The position numbers and the translations under genes were made by a program. Of a stretch of 64,000 bases of DNA, positions 32,501-52,282 are shown one piece after another. The first letter of the stretch is position 1, and each line of letters begins with the position of its first letter. The notes under the pieces are model-generated. The model was given only the letters and a program-made list of their open reading frames with translations, was not told the DNA's origin and ran no database searches. Source of the stretch: Lepidodermella squamata. Taxonomy: Eukaryota; Animalia; Gastrotricha. Where the stretch lies: assembly GCA_047495785.1 (NCBI GenBank), contig JBLDXI010000054.1, positions 558,001 through 622,000 of the forward strand, given 5' to 3'.

Positions 32501-33673
32501 TAAAAAGGGGGAACATTAATCACGGGGTTAATAAAACCAACCGCTTTGCGAGAGTAATTCTCGTGCCTGTTGTAGCTGCAACCGTGCTGAAGCCGCTCAC
32601 TATGTTCTCATCACAGGCCACAATAGATGCGTTTTTCGACGAATCGTAGGAGATCGCCAGGAACTGCCATACATTGCTTAAAGGACAAATCAACTTGACG
32701 GTCTTGGGCGCAGAGCTGAGCATTGCGTTAGCGCCCGGATAAACATGCATAGCAGTCTCGTTCAACTGCCAGATCCCTGCTCCGCCAAGGTTCAAAGTAG
32801 TTGAATAATCAAATACTGGGCAGTCTTTCGAACGGCAACCGGACTTTATCCATATGCCCATCGTCCAAGAGTGATTCCCGTCAAACGCTGATCCGTTGAA
32901 GCGCACATAACTGCTACCATCTAACTGATTCAGAAGTTTCGAGCTTGTCAAACCAAACGGCCCCGGTGCGTTAGGTATTGTTCCATTCGGGGTAGCAGGT
33001 ATTCCGTAAGTCGACCCGCTAACATCGCGCATGTCCCACAGTGCATTCAAGGGCCAATAGCCAACGATGTTAGGTGCGGCGATATTATTTCTAAGTTGCT
33101 GCACAGCAGAGATACCTTGAGCTGCCCTAGGGATCAAATCTTGGCAAGATCTTAGCTGAACTTGCCAAGATCCATCAAAGATCCGTGCACGATCTTGCAC
33201 AGATTTGCAAAGATTTGGGTTCAAAGATCTTAGCAGTTAATTAATTAAGATCTTTGGTGTTATTGAAAGATCATTCAAAGATGACACTAAGAACTGCTCA
33301 GATTTCTAGAATCTTTCATGTTTTTAAATAATTCTTGTTCTCATCTTTCGAAATCTTGGGTCGAAATTTTTACTGGCGCCCACGGAACCGCACCCGAATG
33401 TACGCACCCAGGTATAAAACACGACGAGAATGTCAGAGTTGCCAACTTTATTACCGAAGAAAATCGTTTTTCGGTATAAAAAACACGCCAAGCACGACCT
33501 TAATATTATCACACCTAATTCCAGTGATTGTCTCGAAATCAATATAAAACGCAAACATTTTCTGATAAAAATCGCGCAAACACACGCGCAACCAGCACAC
33601 ACGGACACAGAAATAATGAAGATGATGACGATGATGATAACAATAAAAACAACGAAATAATAATAATAATAGT

Positions 33674-35079
33674 TCATGGGTTTTCTTCTAAATAACGAAT
33701 AGCAGTCTCAATGACGCTATCTCCGCCATCCTCCAGTGAACTCTCAGCTGGATCGGCACCGTCGGCGCGGGCCGAAGTTCGGTCGGCGGCGGCAGCAGCA
33801 ATGCGAGCCGCGCGAAGGCGACGGCGGCGGTGTTCATCGTTGCCCCACTGATTGACAGCAGCACGGGCGCGATCGAAGCGCATCACGTCATCGCCAAAGA
33901 GCGCTCGAAAAGTAACTGTTCAAAAAGAAGCATTTTTTAAAAAATCAGCGGATAAAAAACACGAAAACTTACTTCTAAAGAATTCCAGCTCTTCGTGAGC
34001 ATTGGAATCGTCGATAGGCGTTCGTTTCGACTTTTCGGCAGAGACCGGCTCGATGATACTGTTTGACAGCCTTGTATCGCCGAATAGACCGCGAAACGTG
34101 AAGATAGCCCATTTGTTCGGGCCGCGAGAACGAGCGCGACAGTTGGCGTAGTCGAAGCCATCCCAAACGGCAGGCTGACTCGGGCCGGCTGCGGTGAGTT
34201 CTTGCTTCTTCGTCAGCAGGGCGACTGCTTGAAGGATCTAAATAAATGAAAATTAGAAAATTATTTAGTCAGGGAACAAATTAAAATAAAAAAAATATTC
34301 GCAAAAAAAAAATTAAAATAAAATTAAATTAAAATAAAAACACCCACCTGTTTTAATTGCTTTGCCATTGAAGCTTCAGAAGCAGCAGTTTGCGGCGTGA
34401 TATTGTCGATTGATTGCTGTGGCGTAGTCTCAACGATTGACGACTTGTCAGTTGTCGGCGCCTGCGGGTAGACAGCAGCGCCGCCGGTTGACAGAGACTT
34501 AATTCGCGGTGTTGCACCAGGTTGAGAATGCGACGGTGCCGGACGATGAGAAGCGGGCGTATTCGGCGGCGGGCGATGAGATGCGGGTGTATTCGGCGGC
34601 TGTGACGACGACAAACAAATGGCGGCAGTTTTAGACGATTTCGTCGGCGGAGCGAAAGGCGGTTCAGGCCGGATGAATTCAGAAGGCGCTTTCTTGCGAA
34701 TGACGGTTACTTCATCATCATCTTCGGCAGTGTAACCAGGGCCAAAAGCACAGTGCTTGGGCGGAGAGGTGTGCGATCGCTTGGTAGGGGCGCGGCGAGG
34801 CGAGGCTTGAGGTGAAGCTTGAGGTGAGGCTCGAGGCGATTGGCGCGGCTTGTCGACTCGGCGTAAAGCGATCAGTGCTTTTCGACTGGCTAAGCACTCT
34901 GCTTCAGTATTGGCGACGAGCAGCACGTCGGCTTCGCATTCGCCGTTGCGATCGTCGTAGTAGATGCTGATGCGACGGTTGACCGCAATGTCGGCGGCGT
35001 CAACTTTTTCCAACTCGGACGCTTCGGCGTCGTAGATGCTAAAGCTGCGGTCGCTAACCCACGACACTAGAATGAACAT
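33674..35079 (-). CDS. EnSpm accessory protein with Pro/Ser-rich linker and probable C-terminal BEN-like domain (3 exons)
   Basis: Spliced translation ...PNKWAIFTFRGLFGDTRLSNS...KRTPIDD...FRITFRALFGDDVMRFDRARAAVNQWGNDEHRR fits the BEN pattern by eye; exons ~35079-34348, 34237-33973, 33915-33674. Confidence 0.65.
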
Positions 35080-36062
35080 GGTGATATTCAGAACTAAATT
35101 TAGAGTTAAATGATGAATTTACCTGCGACGAGCGTGTTTATAAACATATTTCTGGCCAATCACGGCCAATTCTTGGCGATGAGCTGCTGTCCCTCAGGTT
35201 TCCACAAGGGCTACGATGACACGGCAAGATAGCCGGCTGTCACGCGGCAACGCCTTTTAGGTTGCAGTCGAGTTGTTTTGGTTGACGGGAACGGCTACCA
35301 CAAGATAAGCACACGATCAAGCAACCGCCTGTGGTTGCACGCAAGTCTCGCCCGCGCACGCAAATGGAGGCGCGATAATAGATGCGCACCTGATGATAAA
35401 TAAACAAACAGAAAACGACCTATCGAGAAAATTCAACGACAAATTAATAGCAATGTAGAAAATCGTGATGAAAATCCACCTTGTTAAGGCCAAACCACAT
35501 GTTTTGATAAGTTTAAATTAAACAAGTCGACAAGTCGTATAGTGTAGTATAGTGTAAGTATGATATTATACTATGCGTACTATGCGTACTAGCGCGCACA
35601 TGTCACTTTCTGAGCGCGCGCTCGTCATCGTCTACTGCTCATCTTCGTAATAATTCGCTCGATGCGGACACACAATGGAGCCTTATCTTACGATATTGTG
35701 AGTTGCGAGGCGCTATTATTTATCGCTATTTTATTATTATGAAGGCAGGCTATTATTATTGCTATAAAACTTCCGCGTCCCGCTGTCAATAATTATGAGT
35801 AATTATTAGGCTATACTATGCTTTATACGGCGAACGAATTTCTGCTCATCGATAATCTATTTTAACATTTTGTTGCCTGCCGAGAATGCAGTTCTCGTTA
35901 TAACGCGCCCAGTTATTATAACGCGCCCAGTTATAACGCGCCGTTAACGCCGCTCTTATTATTATTTCGACACGTGCGTTGCGTTTAATGAAATTATTGC
36001 TAATATTTGAATGTTGAGTTATTTATTTTTGTAGTAAAAATTAAGGTTACAAGTTATATAAA

Positions 36063-36559
36063 ATGAAGAACGCCGCTTCATCATCATCATCATCAACAGC
36101 GCCGCACTGCGCGCTTACACCAGCTGCGCCACGGCGAAAGTGCGACATAATGGAACGCAAGAATAAGCCGCCGCCCGCTCGCAACTCTAAAACGCCCCGG
36201 AGGCCGAGAATCGTCCCGGACAGACAACGGACACCTGATAAGATGAAAAAAGAGGTTAGCTATTAATTTTTATCAATTCTTCTTAATTTAATTTTTATTG
36301 TACTAACAAATAATTGTTTTTACTGTTTCAGGAGGCGCATGAACGAATTCATCCGGCCACGCCTAAAACTGACGGCGAAATAGCCGAGCTTTATGACACT
36401 GAACCGCGCTTCCTCTTCCTTAATCGCTACCGCCTGGCTCCCGGTGACGTCAATAGCGCCTTTGCTGTGCAAGAGCGGCGCACGTTTTGGCGTCTGTACC
36501 TATCTAAAATGGGCAAAATTCCAAAACCCAAGGCAGCAATCCGCCTATTTCGCAAATAA
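36063..36559 (+). CDS. Small basic two-exon protein of unknown function inside the EnSpm element
   Basis: ORFs 36063.. and ..36559 join via GAG|gttag...ttcag|GAG; GC-rich exons in AT-rich context. Confidence 0.5.
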
Positions 36560-36875
36560 ACGTTTCTCATGTGTTATAATTTCTGCTTTCCTGTTTTCGA
36601 TTTGCTTGATCCGATGTGTATTCAATTAATTGTTTTTCACGGCGCCTTTCACTCCATCAAATAAAAAAGTGAATCGCAAAAATTTCAGTTTTTAATTTGA
36701 ACTTCATCTACTGAAATTTTGCCGTGCCATATGGTCAGAAAAGCAGATAATTAGAAAGCAGTTTTAGCAGATCATAAAATTATTGCTAATAATCAGTGTG
36801 AGGCGGCGTTCTCGAAGGCGGCGAAAAAATTGGAATCTGAAAAATTAGATAATAGAAATAGAATAATAGGTACTA

Positions 36876-37134
36876 CCGTATTTTATCGAATAATAGCCAT
36901 GCCGATTAATTTTGTACGAACTTGATAAGTAGTGAAAAAAATCGGGCAATTTTTGAAGGGGGCTTTTCTTTGAGTATAAATAATCACACACATATAAGAT
37001 TATAAGAGCTACGAGATGCTTTTCCAGGCTTCAACTTGCTTTTGAATCACGTGACTATTAGTCGAGACTGCTATTATTAACCTTAGGACCTTTAGGCTAT
37101 TATTCTAGCGTGTTATTATTTCGATAAAATACGG
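36876..37134. mobile_element. Tc1/mariner-pogo-type MITE nested in the EnSpm element
   Basis: TA|CCGTATTTTATCGAA...TTCGATAAAATACGG|TA. Confidence 0.8.
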
Positions 37135-37215
37135 TAATAATCATAACAATATAAAACATCTCCGTTGGTAATCGCAAGTTTCGCCCAGCTATTAGTTAAA
37201 TTCCTATGTGAATAT

Positions 37216-40025
37216 TTACCACAAGTGTGAGTCGTCAAGTTCAGCATCGACGGCAAACAAACGAGAGCCACGATGAACCAGAAACACAGGGGCTGAAATT
37301 GCCGATAATTTTATCAGGGATAAATCAGAAGATTTTTTCGATGTGAGCTCGGAAAATTTTCGGCTTTCGTGCTGCAGCAACGAGTTTTGGTCAAGTAGAC
37401 ACTCGTAAAGACGTTTATGCGATTCGGGTGCCCAATTAAATGACGCAGCTCTCTTTATAATTGAAAGCAACACATCCGGTTGCGATATTTCGAGTTCGCG
37501 ACCGACGGCAAAAAGTTCGGATGTCTCCACGAAACATTCGACGTCGAAGATCCGCCCTTTCAGTGTCCGCACTGCATAAGTCCTTGGCAAAGCAGGTTCA
37601 GCTCCAGCTAGCCGAATAGGGGCAGTGAGGAAACTGTGACCAAAGGGAACTTTGGCAAAGAATTTAGCGCGAGTTGACGGAAACAATGACACTATTTCCT
37701 TTGTCACTTTATGTAGCGGTACCTGTACAAATCTGGCATGAGCTTCATCTTCAACAGCAGAATGTTCCAGGTACATTTTGAGCAGAACAAATCGCGAAAT
37801 TTGCTCAGTATGAAACCGAGTTCCTTCGAAGCTGCTCTTAATATTGGCGATAAATCCCTCGAAGCCAAAAGCAGAGTAGTCACTAAGGCGACCGTGAGAT
37901 TCCACTTTATCAGCTAAATGATGAGCGAGATGGACGTTGTGGGTCTCAAATGACCTGTCATAAAGCGTGGCAACTTCTTTCTGGAAGGTTCGCATTAGTT
38001 TGAAGCACAAATCGGCAAATGGGCGGCGTTCTTCCGACGTAGCTGGCATAATAGACGTCTTGGCGATTCTAATTCCCAAAACATAGGTGACATAGTGGAT
38101 GTACAAAGCCTGAGAAAGCTTGTCAAATAATAGTATCGGCCCAAAATCAAGGGTGAATAGCTTCAAGTGCTTCGCTTTGAATTCTGAGCTCAGATATTTG
38201 AAATCAGGCAGTCTCAGCGAGATCATGCTGCAAGGATATTGAATTAGCGCCAGCTCATTTTTAAGCAGTTCCCGATCTTCCGATCCAATTTTCGCGTGAG
38301 GAGGGAGCCAGCAGACAGAAAGCCATTTGAGGACTCCCTAAAATAATGACAGCTGTAAAATATTCGTATCTCAAGAATGTTCGGGGTATCCCTGAAATAA
38401 ATAAAATTTAATCAATAAATTAATTGTTTCAAATATAATGGCAAGTCTGACGTACACGTGACGTATACGTTTCGTCTCGGCCAAGAGACTCATCAGAGAC
38501 CTTTTTATACATAATTTGAATACAAAATTTATCACAACAAAAAAGTTATATTAGAAATTATGGCTAGTCTGACGTATACATATACGTTTCGTCTCGGCCA
38601 AGAGACTCATCAGAGACCTTTAAATTCTTGAGATAAAAGATATTATCATTAAATTTACCTCAACAGACTGATGCATGTAATCGATTGCGATTTGGTAGGG
38701 CATGCTGATACGATTGTCGAAGCGTGAATTTCCTTTGGATCCGAGACGGAACAAAAGTCGATCTTCCATGAAGCTAGCAACAGTCCTAGGTTTTGCCAAT
38801 TTCACGAGATATGGTCTAACCATTGAACGAACTAAATCGGGTTCTTTCAATTTAACAGCAGGCTGATAACAAAACATGCAGCCAAATTCGCCATTGAACT
38901 GCTGAACATTGAGAACTGCAGCTAAAGCGGGTAGATCCCCAACTAACAACCTGATATCCAGGTTAAAGCCAAATTGTTTACCCCCAATGACCATTTCATG
39001 CTGACCAATGATATCGAAAATTGGGTCAAGCAAATAACCCCATTCATCTTCATTTTGCGGTTTTCTGTCCCCGCACCAGAGGCCAAGAAGCAACACGTTT
39101 CGCCTTTTGAAGCGCAAATTGAGGTCAAGATTGCTGATACTGCCAAGAACAGGCCATATAGAAAGGCGGCCGTGATTAACGAGCGGAGCGCCGTCAGTGC
39201 TAACGTCGATCAGCAGATCTTGGCTCGCCAGATCAGGAAAACTTCTAACTATTATTCCAAGTTGAGGCAGAAGTAGGGGATGTAGCACGCTCAGCTTGAA
39301 ACGATCCGATGAATATTGCGGACCATTATGCACGCATTCAATATTAGGACAAAATTTTTGCTCAACCAAGGAGCTGCATTGAATGCAATATAATTTGCAG
39401 CATCGAATTAAGGTTCTGCCCATTTTTCTTGCGACAGAAGCACAATCGTATGTTGATAGCCCAACTTCAGCGAGATGTGACCGCAGCTTCAACATGAACC
39501 GATTACACACACCCCCAGATTCGATGTATGAATGCAGAATTTTTCCTTTAGTTGTCTGCTCCTTCAAGACCTCCTCCATGCCACTTTCCAGTAAAAACTG
39601 GTCTAGATCAAAGGTTACCACCTGCCCAGGGATATCTAATGTAGAGGTTATATGTAAGGAGTATTCAGAATTAAATATATTCTACTAACCCAAGTCAGGA
39701 TTTTCCTGAAAGCTTTCTTCGCTAGCTGCATAATTTTCATCATCTTCAACGAGGCTAAGGTTGTCAAGTGCTAAGCCGAGACATAAAATGATAGATTCAA
39801 ATAGATAAAATAATAAAAATTACAAGCATTCTCCGGCAAAATGTTTTCAAGATGACCATTAATATCAGGACTAGAGTTGCTATCTGCAACGACGTCAGGG
39901 TAGGGTGGTTCGGAAGCAATGTCATCACTAACATCCTCAGCAAGACTTAAAGGAATCGGAGCTCTTCGTTTTCGAGACCTTGAGTAGCAGTCGTCATCCT
40001 CCTTCCGACTCCTACCGGAATGCAT
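37216..40025 (-). CDS. EnSpm/CMC (Tnp2-family) DDE transposase, spliced
   Basis: TDGAPL...SIWP, GLWCG..KP, GDLPA...QFNGEFGC.FC, IDYMHQSVE|GVLKWL (intron 38338-38658), HNVHLAHHL...HG.L..YSAFGFE; probable small 5' exons at ~39690-39770 and ~39824-40025. Confidence 0.9.
38439..38502 (-). ncRNA. Type I hammerhead ribozyme
   Basis: Minus strand: AGGTCT CTGATGA GTCTC-TTGGCC-GAGAC GAAA CGTATAC-GTCAC-GTGTACG TC^AGACTT GCCA. Full core, three stems, GUC cleavage triplet. Confidence 0.9.
38561..38619 (-). ncRNA. Type I hammerhead ribozyme
   Basis: Minus strand: GGTCT CTGATGA GTCTC-TTGGCC-GAGAC GAAA CGTAT-ATGT-ATACG TC^AGACT AGCCA. Confidence 0.9.
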
Positions 40026-42467
40026 GGAAGTATAGCTTATTAATATGTCCTATAATTAGAAGTCGACCATTATCCTGGTAATATCAGATGCAAAATAAGA
40101 AAAATTTGTCCTTAAATTAGGTCAGAGGTCGGAGACTTTACAAAGTGCTATTGAAAAAGAGATTCTCAGCTCCGTTAGCTATGAGACGTCAAACATTCAA
40201 ATTTACCGGGTGGTTCAAAATATCTTGTCGGTAAATAAAATACATTTTCTTTATTAGAAAATATGTCTAACACATATTGTCATTTATTTTATATTTTTCC
40301 ATTGATTACAAATAATGTTGGCCGTAGTTTGTTATTATTTTCATGAGACCTCATTTTTCATTGTCGGCGTAGAATACGAATGCTAGTTCGGGTGTTTTTT
40401 CATCGCAGGCATTATTCATTCTCGCCTCTCAGTAAGTGAAAATAGTATATCGCATCAGCCTTTGATTGCAAAGTGAATGTGTTTAATGACCTCCAGCCAA
40501 GTTCAGCCAAGATCCGTACAAAGCAATCATAACAAGTCTTTCCAAGTTCTTGCAAAGATCACTCAAGATCTTTGGTAAGAAATCATTCGAAAGTCTTTCC
40601 AAGATCTTGCAAAGATTTATGAAGATCTTGAATCTTAGGAGATCTTAGCAGAACTTCGCAGATTAACCATGGTATTAATCACTAGGGTGTGCATTTTTCA
40701 TGCAGAGAAATTAGAACGAAAAAGCCGATTTTAATCATCATTATTTCGATAATTGTGTTTGCTCGCTAACTTACCGCCGGCTTTTATAGTATATAATATA
40801 ACAATCGGCCTTTCTGGGTTAACATAATATATAAAAATATCTGTCGTGCACTGCTTCACCAAAACGATGCGGCGAAAAATGGAACGAAACATAAATCGCC
40901 TTTCCAACGAAGATTTCGGCTGGCATAAAAACGTGTTGCTACCGAGTTGTCAAAACATTAGGAATGTCAGACGGATTTCAAATGAATTACTAAATTATTT
41001 GTTATAATCATTACTTATAGCTAGGTGCCGCAACCATATGCAATTAATTGATATTCACCAGGATTAACTGAGTTCTCGCAAAACATCAGCTGCTCATAGT
41101 TAAGATGGCGGCAACGTTTACTTTCGCTTTTTACTGTTCTTCTTAGGCGGCCTGGGTGAAATGTTGATGTCTCCTTTCAATAATTCATGGTGCACATTGA
41201 TTGCATATAGGTATCGCCTAAATTAGCGGCATTAGCGAGAGAAGGCTTGGCCACTAGCTAGACAGAATCAATTTTGGTTTATTCAGAGCGAAAAGGAACA
41301 AAATATCAGTATAAAGAATCTGCCATATTATCTGCTGTGTTTGCCTATTCCAGGCCAGCCGAAGTTGTTGATTGAAATGTGTACAATGATCCGGAAGATA
41401 AACGTTGAAGTTACGAATTGACACTCCGTGCATCGAATATGTAAGCGGTTCTCTACGTTTACTCAAAATTGCGCTCAAGTCGCACATGCACCCTAATGTA
41501 GACCGTAAATTTTGACAGAATGATCTATTTGAGTCCTCACTGTTATTGCGGGATCTAACATAATTCGCGTTATTGCATGCCGTTATCTGAATTGTATAAA
41601 AATGAAAAACGCTGAAACGCTTAGTGGAGCCGCTTAATCCAAAATTTTGTGAATTGGCTGAAAGGTGTGCAATTTTATTGGTCGGTTAAATTGCGATAAT
41701 AGAATTGGCGCATTAGTCATCATTACGCACAACGAAAGGATAGGTCGATTGCTCAACATTTTAAAAGCTTGTCTGGTGACGGCATTTTCGCAACTCCGCG
41801 CTAGGGCTTCTCTTAAACGTGCTCGTATGCGGCGTTTACTGCGCATATATAGTGAATTTGAACAAATCTCGCTTCACTGCACATTGGCAATCGCAGCCGA
41901 GGTGTTGGCGCGAACACGGCTGGGAACAAATGGAACCATAGATCATAGATCACTCCGTTCCACATGATTGGAACCAGTGCCATTATGAGCACCCGCACGC
42001 GCCACACCCGGGCAGCCGGACTTGTGCTGTCCTGGGGTGGATCATCTAAATCTGACCATAGTGCAAACCTCGCCTCTAGTCATCGCTCATCGCGCCATGG
42101 TATCTATCCAATGCCCGCTCAAGTTACATTTTGCCACGATCAAGATGTTCTCTCCTGTGATTGAATAGTGCCTTACGACTTACGATTTATTCTCTCTCAG
42201 TAATGTTAGTCTCTCTTTTTGTATCTTCCGAAGTTGGTACGTTCCATTATACATAAACATCGCTCTTTCCCACTTTCCCTTCCTAAGTTGTCCTCTTCTG
42301 AGCCTTATGGCTCCTTAACTAATAAATAACTGAATACAAAAATACGTGTATAACACGAGCTAGTCAGGTGGCAAGCAAATTGATTATCCGCCCCTCCCCC
42401 CTCAGATGTTACTTGCTTCTGACATTGCTAACGTGAGACGTGAGGCCATTTACTGGAATCTGGAACA

Positions 42468-51968: not shown

Positions 51969-52282
51969 AAAAAATTTAGAAATTCTTCAATTATTCCTGT
52001 CGGATTCTTAGTTGTCGATGATTTATTTTGAAGTGTTTTCGAGTTTGACAATATCTCTATGGATGCTCTCCTGTATTGAATCTCGGAAAAGAAGGAAAAT
52101 AGCCTCTTCACCGGCCTCTTCACCAGATAGCACCCGTGAAAACCATCAACTGTGATGATCGGGCTGCTCTATCATCTCAACCCTTAGCCCATGAATACCG
52201 CCATAATTTGTGTCTGGGCTCTAAATCCATCCATCCATCCATGCTCAATCCTATTTTCTTCAAGATAGGTTTTATCCTATCA

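Follow-up and report, generated by a model that had tools for sequence, protein, structure and literature searches.

Type I hammerhead ribozymes of animals are tied to Penelope-like elements and to retrozymes. Penelope-like elements carry hammerheads near their 3' ends; their copies are heavily 5'-truncated, with partial head-to-tail insertions and with odd extensions where the inserts end (PMC8557442). Animal retrozymes, with monomers in the range of 150 to 450 bp (PMC7229834), have been proposed to be non-autonomous derivatives of Penelope-like elements and are common in introns (bioRxiv 10.64898/2026.07.22.740005). Here we analyze two type I hammerhead motifs that lie in an intron of a DNA transposase gene of the gastrotrich Lepidodermella squamata; one full-text literature search found no published report of a hammerhead pair in sense orientation within an intron of a DNA transposase gene. 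The window analyzed is a stretch of 64,000 nucleotides (assembly GCA_047495785.1, contig JBLDXI010000054.1, positions 558,001 to 622,000), and coordinates refer to positions within it unless another contig or locus is named. The motifs are real and their context is unusual, and a passenger in a transposon intron is the simplest account of them. We consider it fairly probable that the pair is retroelement-derived, probably still competent to cleave, and carried in the intron as a passenger rather than as a switch built into the transposon.

Two hammerheads in an oversized transposase intron

The gene parts and ribozyme features on which the analysis rests are the following.

38659..39621, minus strand: transposase exon A, the open frame used for searches; acceptor probably near 39635; C-terminal end DYMHQSVE
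38338..38658, minus strand: phase-0 intron of 321 nt, from GT (38658) to AG (38338), 31% G+C
37219..38337, minus strand: transposase exon B, 373 codons up to the stop; N-terminal start GVLKW; frame open
38561..38618, minus strand: hammerhead 1 (HH1), type I, helix III of 5-6 bp; predicted cut at 38571/38570
38439..38501, minus strand: hammerhead 2 (HH2), type I, helix III of 8-9 bp by way of an 11-nt tandem duplication; predicted cut at 38449/38448
38561-38564 (HH1) and 38439-38442 (HH2), minus strand: GCCA, by complementarity the putative pseudoknot partner of loop II
38449..38570, minus strand: predicted RNA released by double cleavage, 122 nt, its ends joined by stem I in the predicted fold

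Read on the minus strand, both motifs have stem I GGUCU/AGACU, the core CUGAUGA and then GAAA, and the cleavage triplet GUC, in agreement with the type I core pattern (CUGANGA...GAAA with an NUH triplet). Stem II consists of 5 bp (GUCUC/GAGAC, with G10.1-C11.1) and carries the loop UUGGCC; helix III is closed, with A15.1-U16.1; helix I is open, and helices II and III are capped. The two cores are identical to each other, and all catalytic positions and the three helices are intact in both motifs. In each, UGGC of loop II is complementary to the GCCA found 3 nt past stem I. A first-pass annotation of the window had proposed two complete type I hammerheads on the transposase strand, with these sequence elements, the loop II complementarity, and the two cuts yielding a 122-nt product; every element was confirmed by reading, and the predicted cut positions are correct on the minus strand.

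The core pattern has two matches in the window against 0.00 expected (none in 100 shuffles), and 101 matches across the 121 Mb genome against 16 in a reversed control. With the Rfam hammerhead models that the annotation had suggested as a check, no family reached its gathering score in the window. The best match was RAGATH-1-hammerhead (30.5 bits, cut-off 56.3), followed by Hammerhead_3 (24.6 bits, cut-off 48.5); genome-wide, there was no match to RF00163 with 73 of ~19,900 candidates scored. Since these gathering scores are not reached, the identification as hammerheads rests on the consensus features.

Two upstream introns measured in the same transposase gene are 52-54 nt long, so the 321-nt intron is an outlier, as the annotation had recognized when it set 321 bp between DYMHQSVE and GVLKW against ~50 bp elsewhere. 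Exons A and B were searched separately, and each was aligned on its own to homologues. Against P0003, which has no introns, the alignments cover residues 222-413 (exon A) and 465-623 (exon B) and place the two exons colinearly in a single transposase. Pfam matches of the window transposase are weak, with DUF1258 sub-threshold, and those of a sister family are likewise sub-threshold. Some of the 1906 homologues of exon A are above the Pfam cut-offs for Transposase_21, DUF1258, and DUF4218, and P0003 is above the cut-off for Transposase_21 (37.8 bits) and for DUF1258, with a weaker match to DUF4218. Because full-length homologues of exon A pass the Transposase_21 and DUF1258 cut-offs, assignment of the element to the CACTA/EnSpm type (CMC superfamily) appears reasonable, though its termini are not CACTA. 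The transposase is of the Transposase_21 (tnp2) type as judged from these homologues.

The oversized intron resolves into a short intron and an inserted piece, as follows.

38367..38635, minus strand: 269-bp insert bounded by a perfect 12-bp inverted repeat, leaving 23 + 29 = 52 nt of intron outside
38624-38635 and 38367-38378: arms of the 12-bp inverted repeat, which bracket the ribozyme pair

Such an inverted repeat occurs by chance in ~0.0045 of shuffles, and most simply it would mark the ends of the insert; no other copy of it was found in the genome. A reading of the insert as a miniature inverted-repeat transposable element, with a TA duplication and 10-bp terminal inverted repeats, found no support: in the genome, the 3' end is unique and so is the repeat pair. 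The insert is present in both genomic copies of the transposon with 98% identity (the second copy, on contig C6, has lost 3 bp of the 3' arm of the inverted repeat), and it therefore predates the last transposition. None of the four differences between the copies falls in the ribozymes, which is not significant (P = 0.11). The sister transposon family, with four copies at 39-40% amino acid identity, has at exactly this phase-0 position a 52-nt intron without a ribozyme. Among the relatives found, P0001 (Logan contig L087, 49% amino acid identity) is the closest; it has the same exon end, and its contig stops 250 nt past that end, before any exon B or hammerhead sequence. As judged from these comparisons, the insert is a recent addition to an old intron.

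The element that carries the gene is delimited by comparison with its second copy (C6:10233-17556), these being the only two copies in the genome.

33125..40687, minus strand: complete cut-and-paste transposon of 7563 bp, both ends coinciding exactly with the limits of its match to the second copy

The exactly shared termini, together with the differing flanks of the window and C6 copies, identify a 7.6-kb transposon that has moved. Segmental duplication was rejected as an explanation for the two copies because the match stops at the termini and the flanks are independent. The terminal inverted repeats are imperfect, with CCCTAG at both ends in inverted orientation, against the CACTA or CAC expected for CACTA/EnSpm (CMC) elements. 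Subterminal AAGATCTTG-type repeats lie in inverted orientation inside both ends, and a possible 2-bp CA/CA duplication is seen at the window copy only, where target duplications of 2-4 bp are expected for CACTA/EnSpm elements. Exon B of the C6 copy is missing 358 bp, at the equivalent of window positions 37187-37543. Divergence between the copies is uneven, with 96% identity in the 3' half and 99.6% in the transposase half. A 20-nt inverted repeat (36871-36890 / 37120-37139; 95% complementary, arms 229 nt apart) is also present inside the transposon just downstream of the transposase stop, and it may represent a small nested insert or an RNA hairpin.

A retroelement family with a 3'-terminal hammerhead

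A genome search placed the ~60-nt hammerhead module at more than 20 other loci with 80-98% identity. Its source family is a non-autonomous retroelement, dispersed at low copy number (~35-40), that measures ~290 nt and has the hammerhead at its 3' terminus; examples of this element are found at L014:1276-1566, L020, L008, and about 30 other places. The copies have a fixed 3' end and variable, truncated 5' ends, and target duplications of 11-14 bp were observed (11 bp at L009, 13 bp at L011, and 14 bp at L020). At L020, the final ~14 nt of one unit lie ahead of a full second unit, in a partial head-to-tail arrangement. The fixed 3' end, the variable 5' ends, and the duplications are, at the sequence level, the signature of target-primed reverse transcription. 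This family shows the traits described for Penelope-like elements: a ribozyme close to the 3' end, many 5'-truncated copies, and partial head-to-tail insertions. Other copies of the module adjoin ordinary genes, including those for an ion channel, TRPM, a fucosyltransferase, and an NB-ARC protein.

Across 17 family members, 93% of cells are paired in the hammerhead register, compared to 16-41% in slid registers. The UGGC/GCCA complementarity is retained in 16-17 of the 17 copies; one change is to G-U, and none is compensatory. A covariation test of the hammerhead family was likewise negative for compensatory changes, the family being too young for them. Mutated cores are found in several copies, and changes in pairs are never compensatory; from their sequences, the copies appear young and decaying neutrally.

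A reverse transcriptase (RT) located beside L003 (C38:250028-250213) was rejected as the partner of the family, as it belongs to a long interspersed nuclear element (LINE) that ends ~70 nt ahead of the ribozyme unit. A 109-bp segment of the window (52130-52238; C54:610130-610238) is 94% identical to the 3' end of this LINE, which lies upstream of the L003 hammerhead.

A further copy of the module (C7:4208540-4208600) is located on the sense strand of a P-element-type transposase gene at L004 (G000:C7:4207040-4210104). It sits in a ~500-nt gap (intron) between two long open frames, the upstream one with Tnp_P_element and TNP-like RNaseH domains and the downstream one with a TNP-like GTP-binding domain, making this a second DNA-transposase intron with this hammerhead. 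L003 and L004 (C7:4208474-4208641) have in common a ~150-nt unit with 77% identity that ends in a splice-site-like sequence (...YYCAG|G..ACAG|GTAAG). Differences between their hammerheads are limited to loop III and to N7, a free position of the core, with 0 changes in ~50 constrained positions (0.77^50, or ~2e-6); this sameness could reflect constraint in the source lineage or at the two loci. Other families with hammerhead cores form regular arrays, with a 1605-bp period at G000:C32:4488729-4502313 and periods of 2-6 kb at the contig starts of C9, C13, C14, and C20, at C4:1875477-1918798, and at C64:681137-758174.

Probable origin and possible effect of the ribozyme pair

The repeated unit of the pair measures 117/122 bp, and beyond the ribozyme the two units share nothing. 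Spacer similarity is that of shuffled sequences (p = 0.60 and 0.33), no homology was detectable above the shuffled level among the sequences before, between, and after HH1 and HH2, and Tandem Repeats Finder found no 117/122 period in the intron. The flanks of the pair show no resemblance to those of other family members. Origin as a tandem duplicate or a diverged tandem monomer was rejected because spacer and flank alignments are at chance level. The unit, with its spacer and 3' part, occurs in the genome only in the two transposon copies. A retrozyme by definition is rejected as well, since there is no whole-monomer repeat, the unit is below the 150-450 bp range, and it has no other loci. The first-pass annotation had suggested a mini-retrozyme hitchhiking on the transposon; the hitchhiker is close to the evidence, and the retrozyme is not. 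It had also held that a regulatory role would be contradicted if relatives had a plain short intron while the 122-bp unit was a dispersed repeat. The genome-wide search of the intron that it proposed found the insert in both transposon copies, relatives do have the plain short intron, and the ribozyme is dispersed, but the 122-bp unit itself has no independent occurrence.

That annotation had further taken the identical cores, AT-rich flanks thought to have diverged, and a helix III indel that still pairs as signs of selection on structure. With unrelated spacers, the flanks are not demonstrably homologous, and copies of a young module would likewise have identical cores amid unrelated flanks, so that these signs do not establish selection on structure. 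Helix III of HH1 and HH2 has a 7-nt prefix and a 9-nt suffix in common and differs in the middle, and a helix III slip of the same kind is present at L017. A compensated indel was rejected, as helix III of the family is a palindrome and any tandem duplication of it will therefore pair with itself.

Predicted folds bear on whether the motifs could be active. In isolation, HH1 and HH2 each have a three-way junction as their minimum-energy structure. The minimum-energy fold of the whole intron instead pairs the two stem II regions together, and such pairing between near-palindromic copies might inhibit cleavage. The fold of the 122-nt RNA is not significant (z = -1.5). Consensus-type family copies, such as that at C29:1944512-1944567, have a 3-bp palindromic helix III (a 10-nt palindrome) and are predicted to misfold as monomers, which suggests that they would cleave only as dimers.

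The motifs may be inert, young relics with no appreciable cleavage in vivo because of mutual misfolding or fast splicing, the insert then being intron filler. The stem II pairing predicted for the whole intron, Rfam scores under gathering, and the lack of covariation are consistent with this. We regard it as unlikely, given that the catalytic positions and all three helices are intact in both motifs, that the isolated motifs fold correctly, and that co-transcriptional folding favors local hairpins. At the other extreme, the pair could be a working mini-retrozyme, with a transposon promoter driving a 122-nt RNA that is circularized by tRNA ligase and serves as a retrotransposition or replication intermediate. 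Double cleavage would indeed free a unit held together at its ends by stem I, its pseudoknot partner coming from the upstream unit, and animal retrozymes operate in this way (PMC7229834). We find this very improbable, however, as the two units are not repeats of a single monomer, 122 nt is short of the known 150-450 bp range (PMC7229834), and the unit and spacer, found nowhere else in the genome, show no sign of independent propagation.

A regulatory alternative is that the transposon keeps the ribozymes as a self-limiting switch, in which co-transcriptional cleavage inside the intron, in competition with splicing, would limit the amount of transposase mRNA and so protect both host and element. 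The ribozymes are on the sense strand in the sole oversized intron, both have a stabilized helix III and, in contrast to dispersed copies, are predicted to fold natively on their own, there are no core substitutions in either ribozyme or between the two transposon copies, and transposition occurred after the ribozymes were acquired; in the P-element-type transposase gene on C7, too, a ~500-nt intron holds a copy in sense orientation. Against this, the ribozyme is absent from the sister family, the transposon has only two copies, one of them with a deletion, the lack of ribozyme differences between the copies is not significant (P = 0.11), and the module belongs to a generic repeat scattered through the genome. 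Moreover, ribozymes in introns can be harmless given fast splicing or tethered exons. We consider such a switch distinctly unlikely, and it is just as doubtful that the pair was kept, and perhaps improved by lengthening of helix III, as a self-restraint device in which a race between cleavage and splicing sets the dose of transposase. The pair would be equally readable as a retroelement-derived parasite crippling a DNA transposon, of which the P-element-type transposase would be a second case.

If the pair is instead a retroelement-derived passenger, as we favor, a 269-bp piece with two head-to-tail ~60-nt type I modules would have landed in an ancestral ~52-nt intron and traveled since then with the CACTA/EnSpm-type (CMC) transposon. 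The module would be the 3'-terminal part of a small non-autonomous retroelement spreading by target-primed reverse transcription, and 5' truncation with partial head-to-tail insertion, in the Penelope-like mode, could yield a doublet of extremely truncated copies. With their long helix III, both ribozymes have the active fold as their predicted ground state, and from this we infer that they are cleavage-competent. Each could fold on emerging during transcription and cut after GUC. A cut ahead of splicing would sever exon A from exon B, with loss of some transposase pre-mRNA, and the released 122-nt RNA would have 5'-OH and 2',3'-cyclic phosphate ends that meet in stem I; a cut made once the transcript is committed to splicing would do no harm. 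For the transposon, the overall consequence would be neutral to mildly harmful, with no evolved function. The element has transposed at least once since gaining the insert, so the cost of the insert is not prohibitive.

Several observations weigh against this passenger account. Two modules in the same orientation 117 nt apart cannot be random hits of a ~40-copy family and therefore require one event or targeted re-insertion, and the passenger account does not explain this doublet. No other short-range hammerhead pair was found in the genome, where the closest other core matches are at least 1.6 kb apart. Neither HH1 nor HH2 has a core substitution, and in both an extended helix III goes with a native monomer fold, unlike in consensus-type copies. 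A long helix III is present in 2/2 intron copies compared to ~2/21 other copies (post hoc p = 0.02), and this excess hints at selection for cleavage. Nor was an autonomous element sharing the 3' end found, genome matches being no longer than ~290 nt; the genome also yielded no RT or GIY-YIG gene linked to the 3' end of the family. Because no autonomous partner shares this end, the Penelope link of the source family is drawn by analogy, and the 11-14-bp duplications would fit a LINE as well.

If the pair cleaves, it would provide a natural test of ribozyme speed against the splicing of very short introns and a case in which a mobile element interferes with a second one. Even as a passenger alone, it documents a small retroelement family with a 3'-terminal hammerhead and the shortest two-ribozyme unit so far (122 nt), and it shows that a transposon is able to move while carrying a ribozyme pair.

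Comparison with described hammerhead systems

The intron pair resembles animal non-LTR retrozymes (PMC7229834; bioRxiv 10.64898/2026.07.22.740005) in its head-to-tail type I hammerheads in low-G+C DNA, in unit ends that would meet in stem I after double cleavage, in its retroelement origin, and in its location in an intron, which is frequent among retrozymes. Those elements, however, repeat whole monomers of 150-450 bp at many loci and are expressed as circles of 170-400 nt, whereas the pair described here has only the ribozyme in common between its units, measures 117/122 bp, and is present in one transposon only.

The source family is comparable to Penelope-like hammerheads (PMC8557442; PMC6155905) in its near-3'-end ribozyme, 5' truncation, and partial head-to-tail insertions, and in a short, palindromic consensus helix III suggesting action as a dimer. 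It differs from Penelope-like elements in that no RT/GIY-YIG gene was found linked to its 3' end in the genome. Penelope-like hammerheads are described in reviews as minimal, in contrast to the long helix III and the potential pseudoknot between loop II and the 3' flank in the intron copies. By description, the family may also be likened to Sm-alpha of Schistosoma mansoni, presented in PMC6155905 as a short non-coding dispersed retroelement with an intact type I hammerhead; Sm-alpha has thousands of copies there, compared to ~40 here, where the ribozyme is at the very 3' end.

The amniote intronic hammerheads of RECK, CTCL, and DTNB, as treated in PMC6155905 after de la Pena and Garcia-Robles (2010), share with the intron pair the type I motif on the sense strand, a retroelement ancestry, a spliceosomal intron as location, and a possible effect on mRNA biogenesis. 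According to that source, they are single motifs in host genes and are conserved across vertebrate classes, whereas the motifs described here are a pair, located in a selfish transposase gene and seen in one species.

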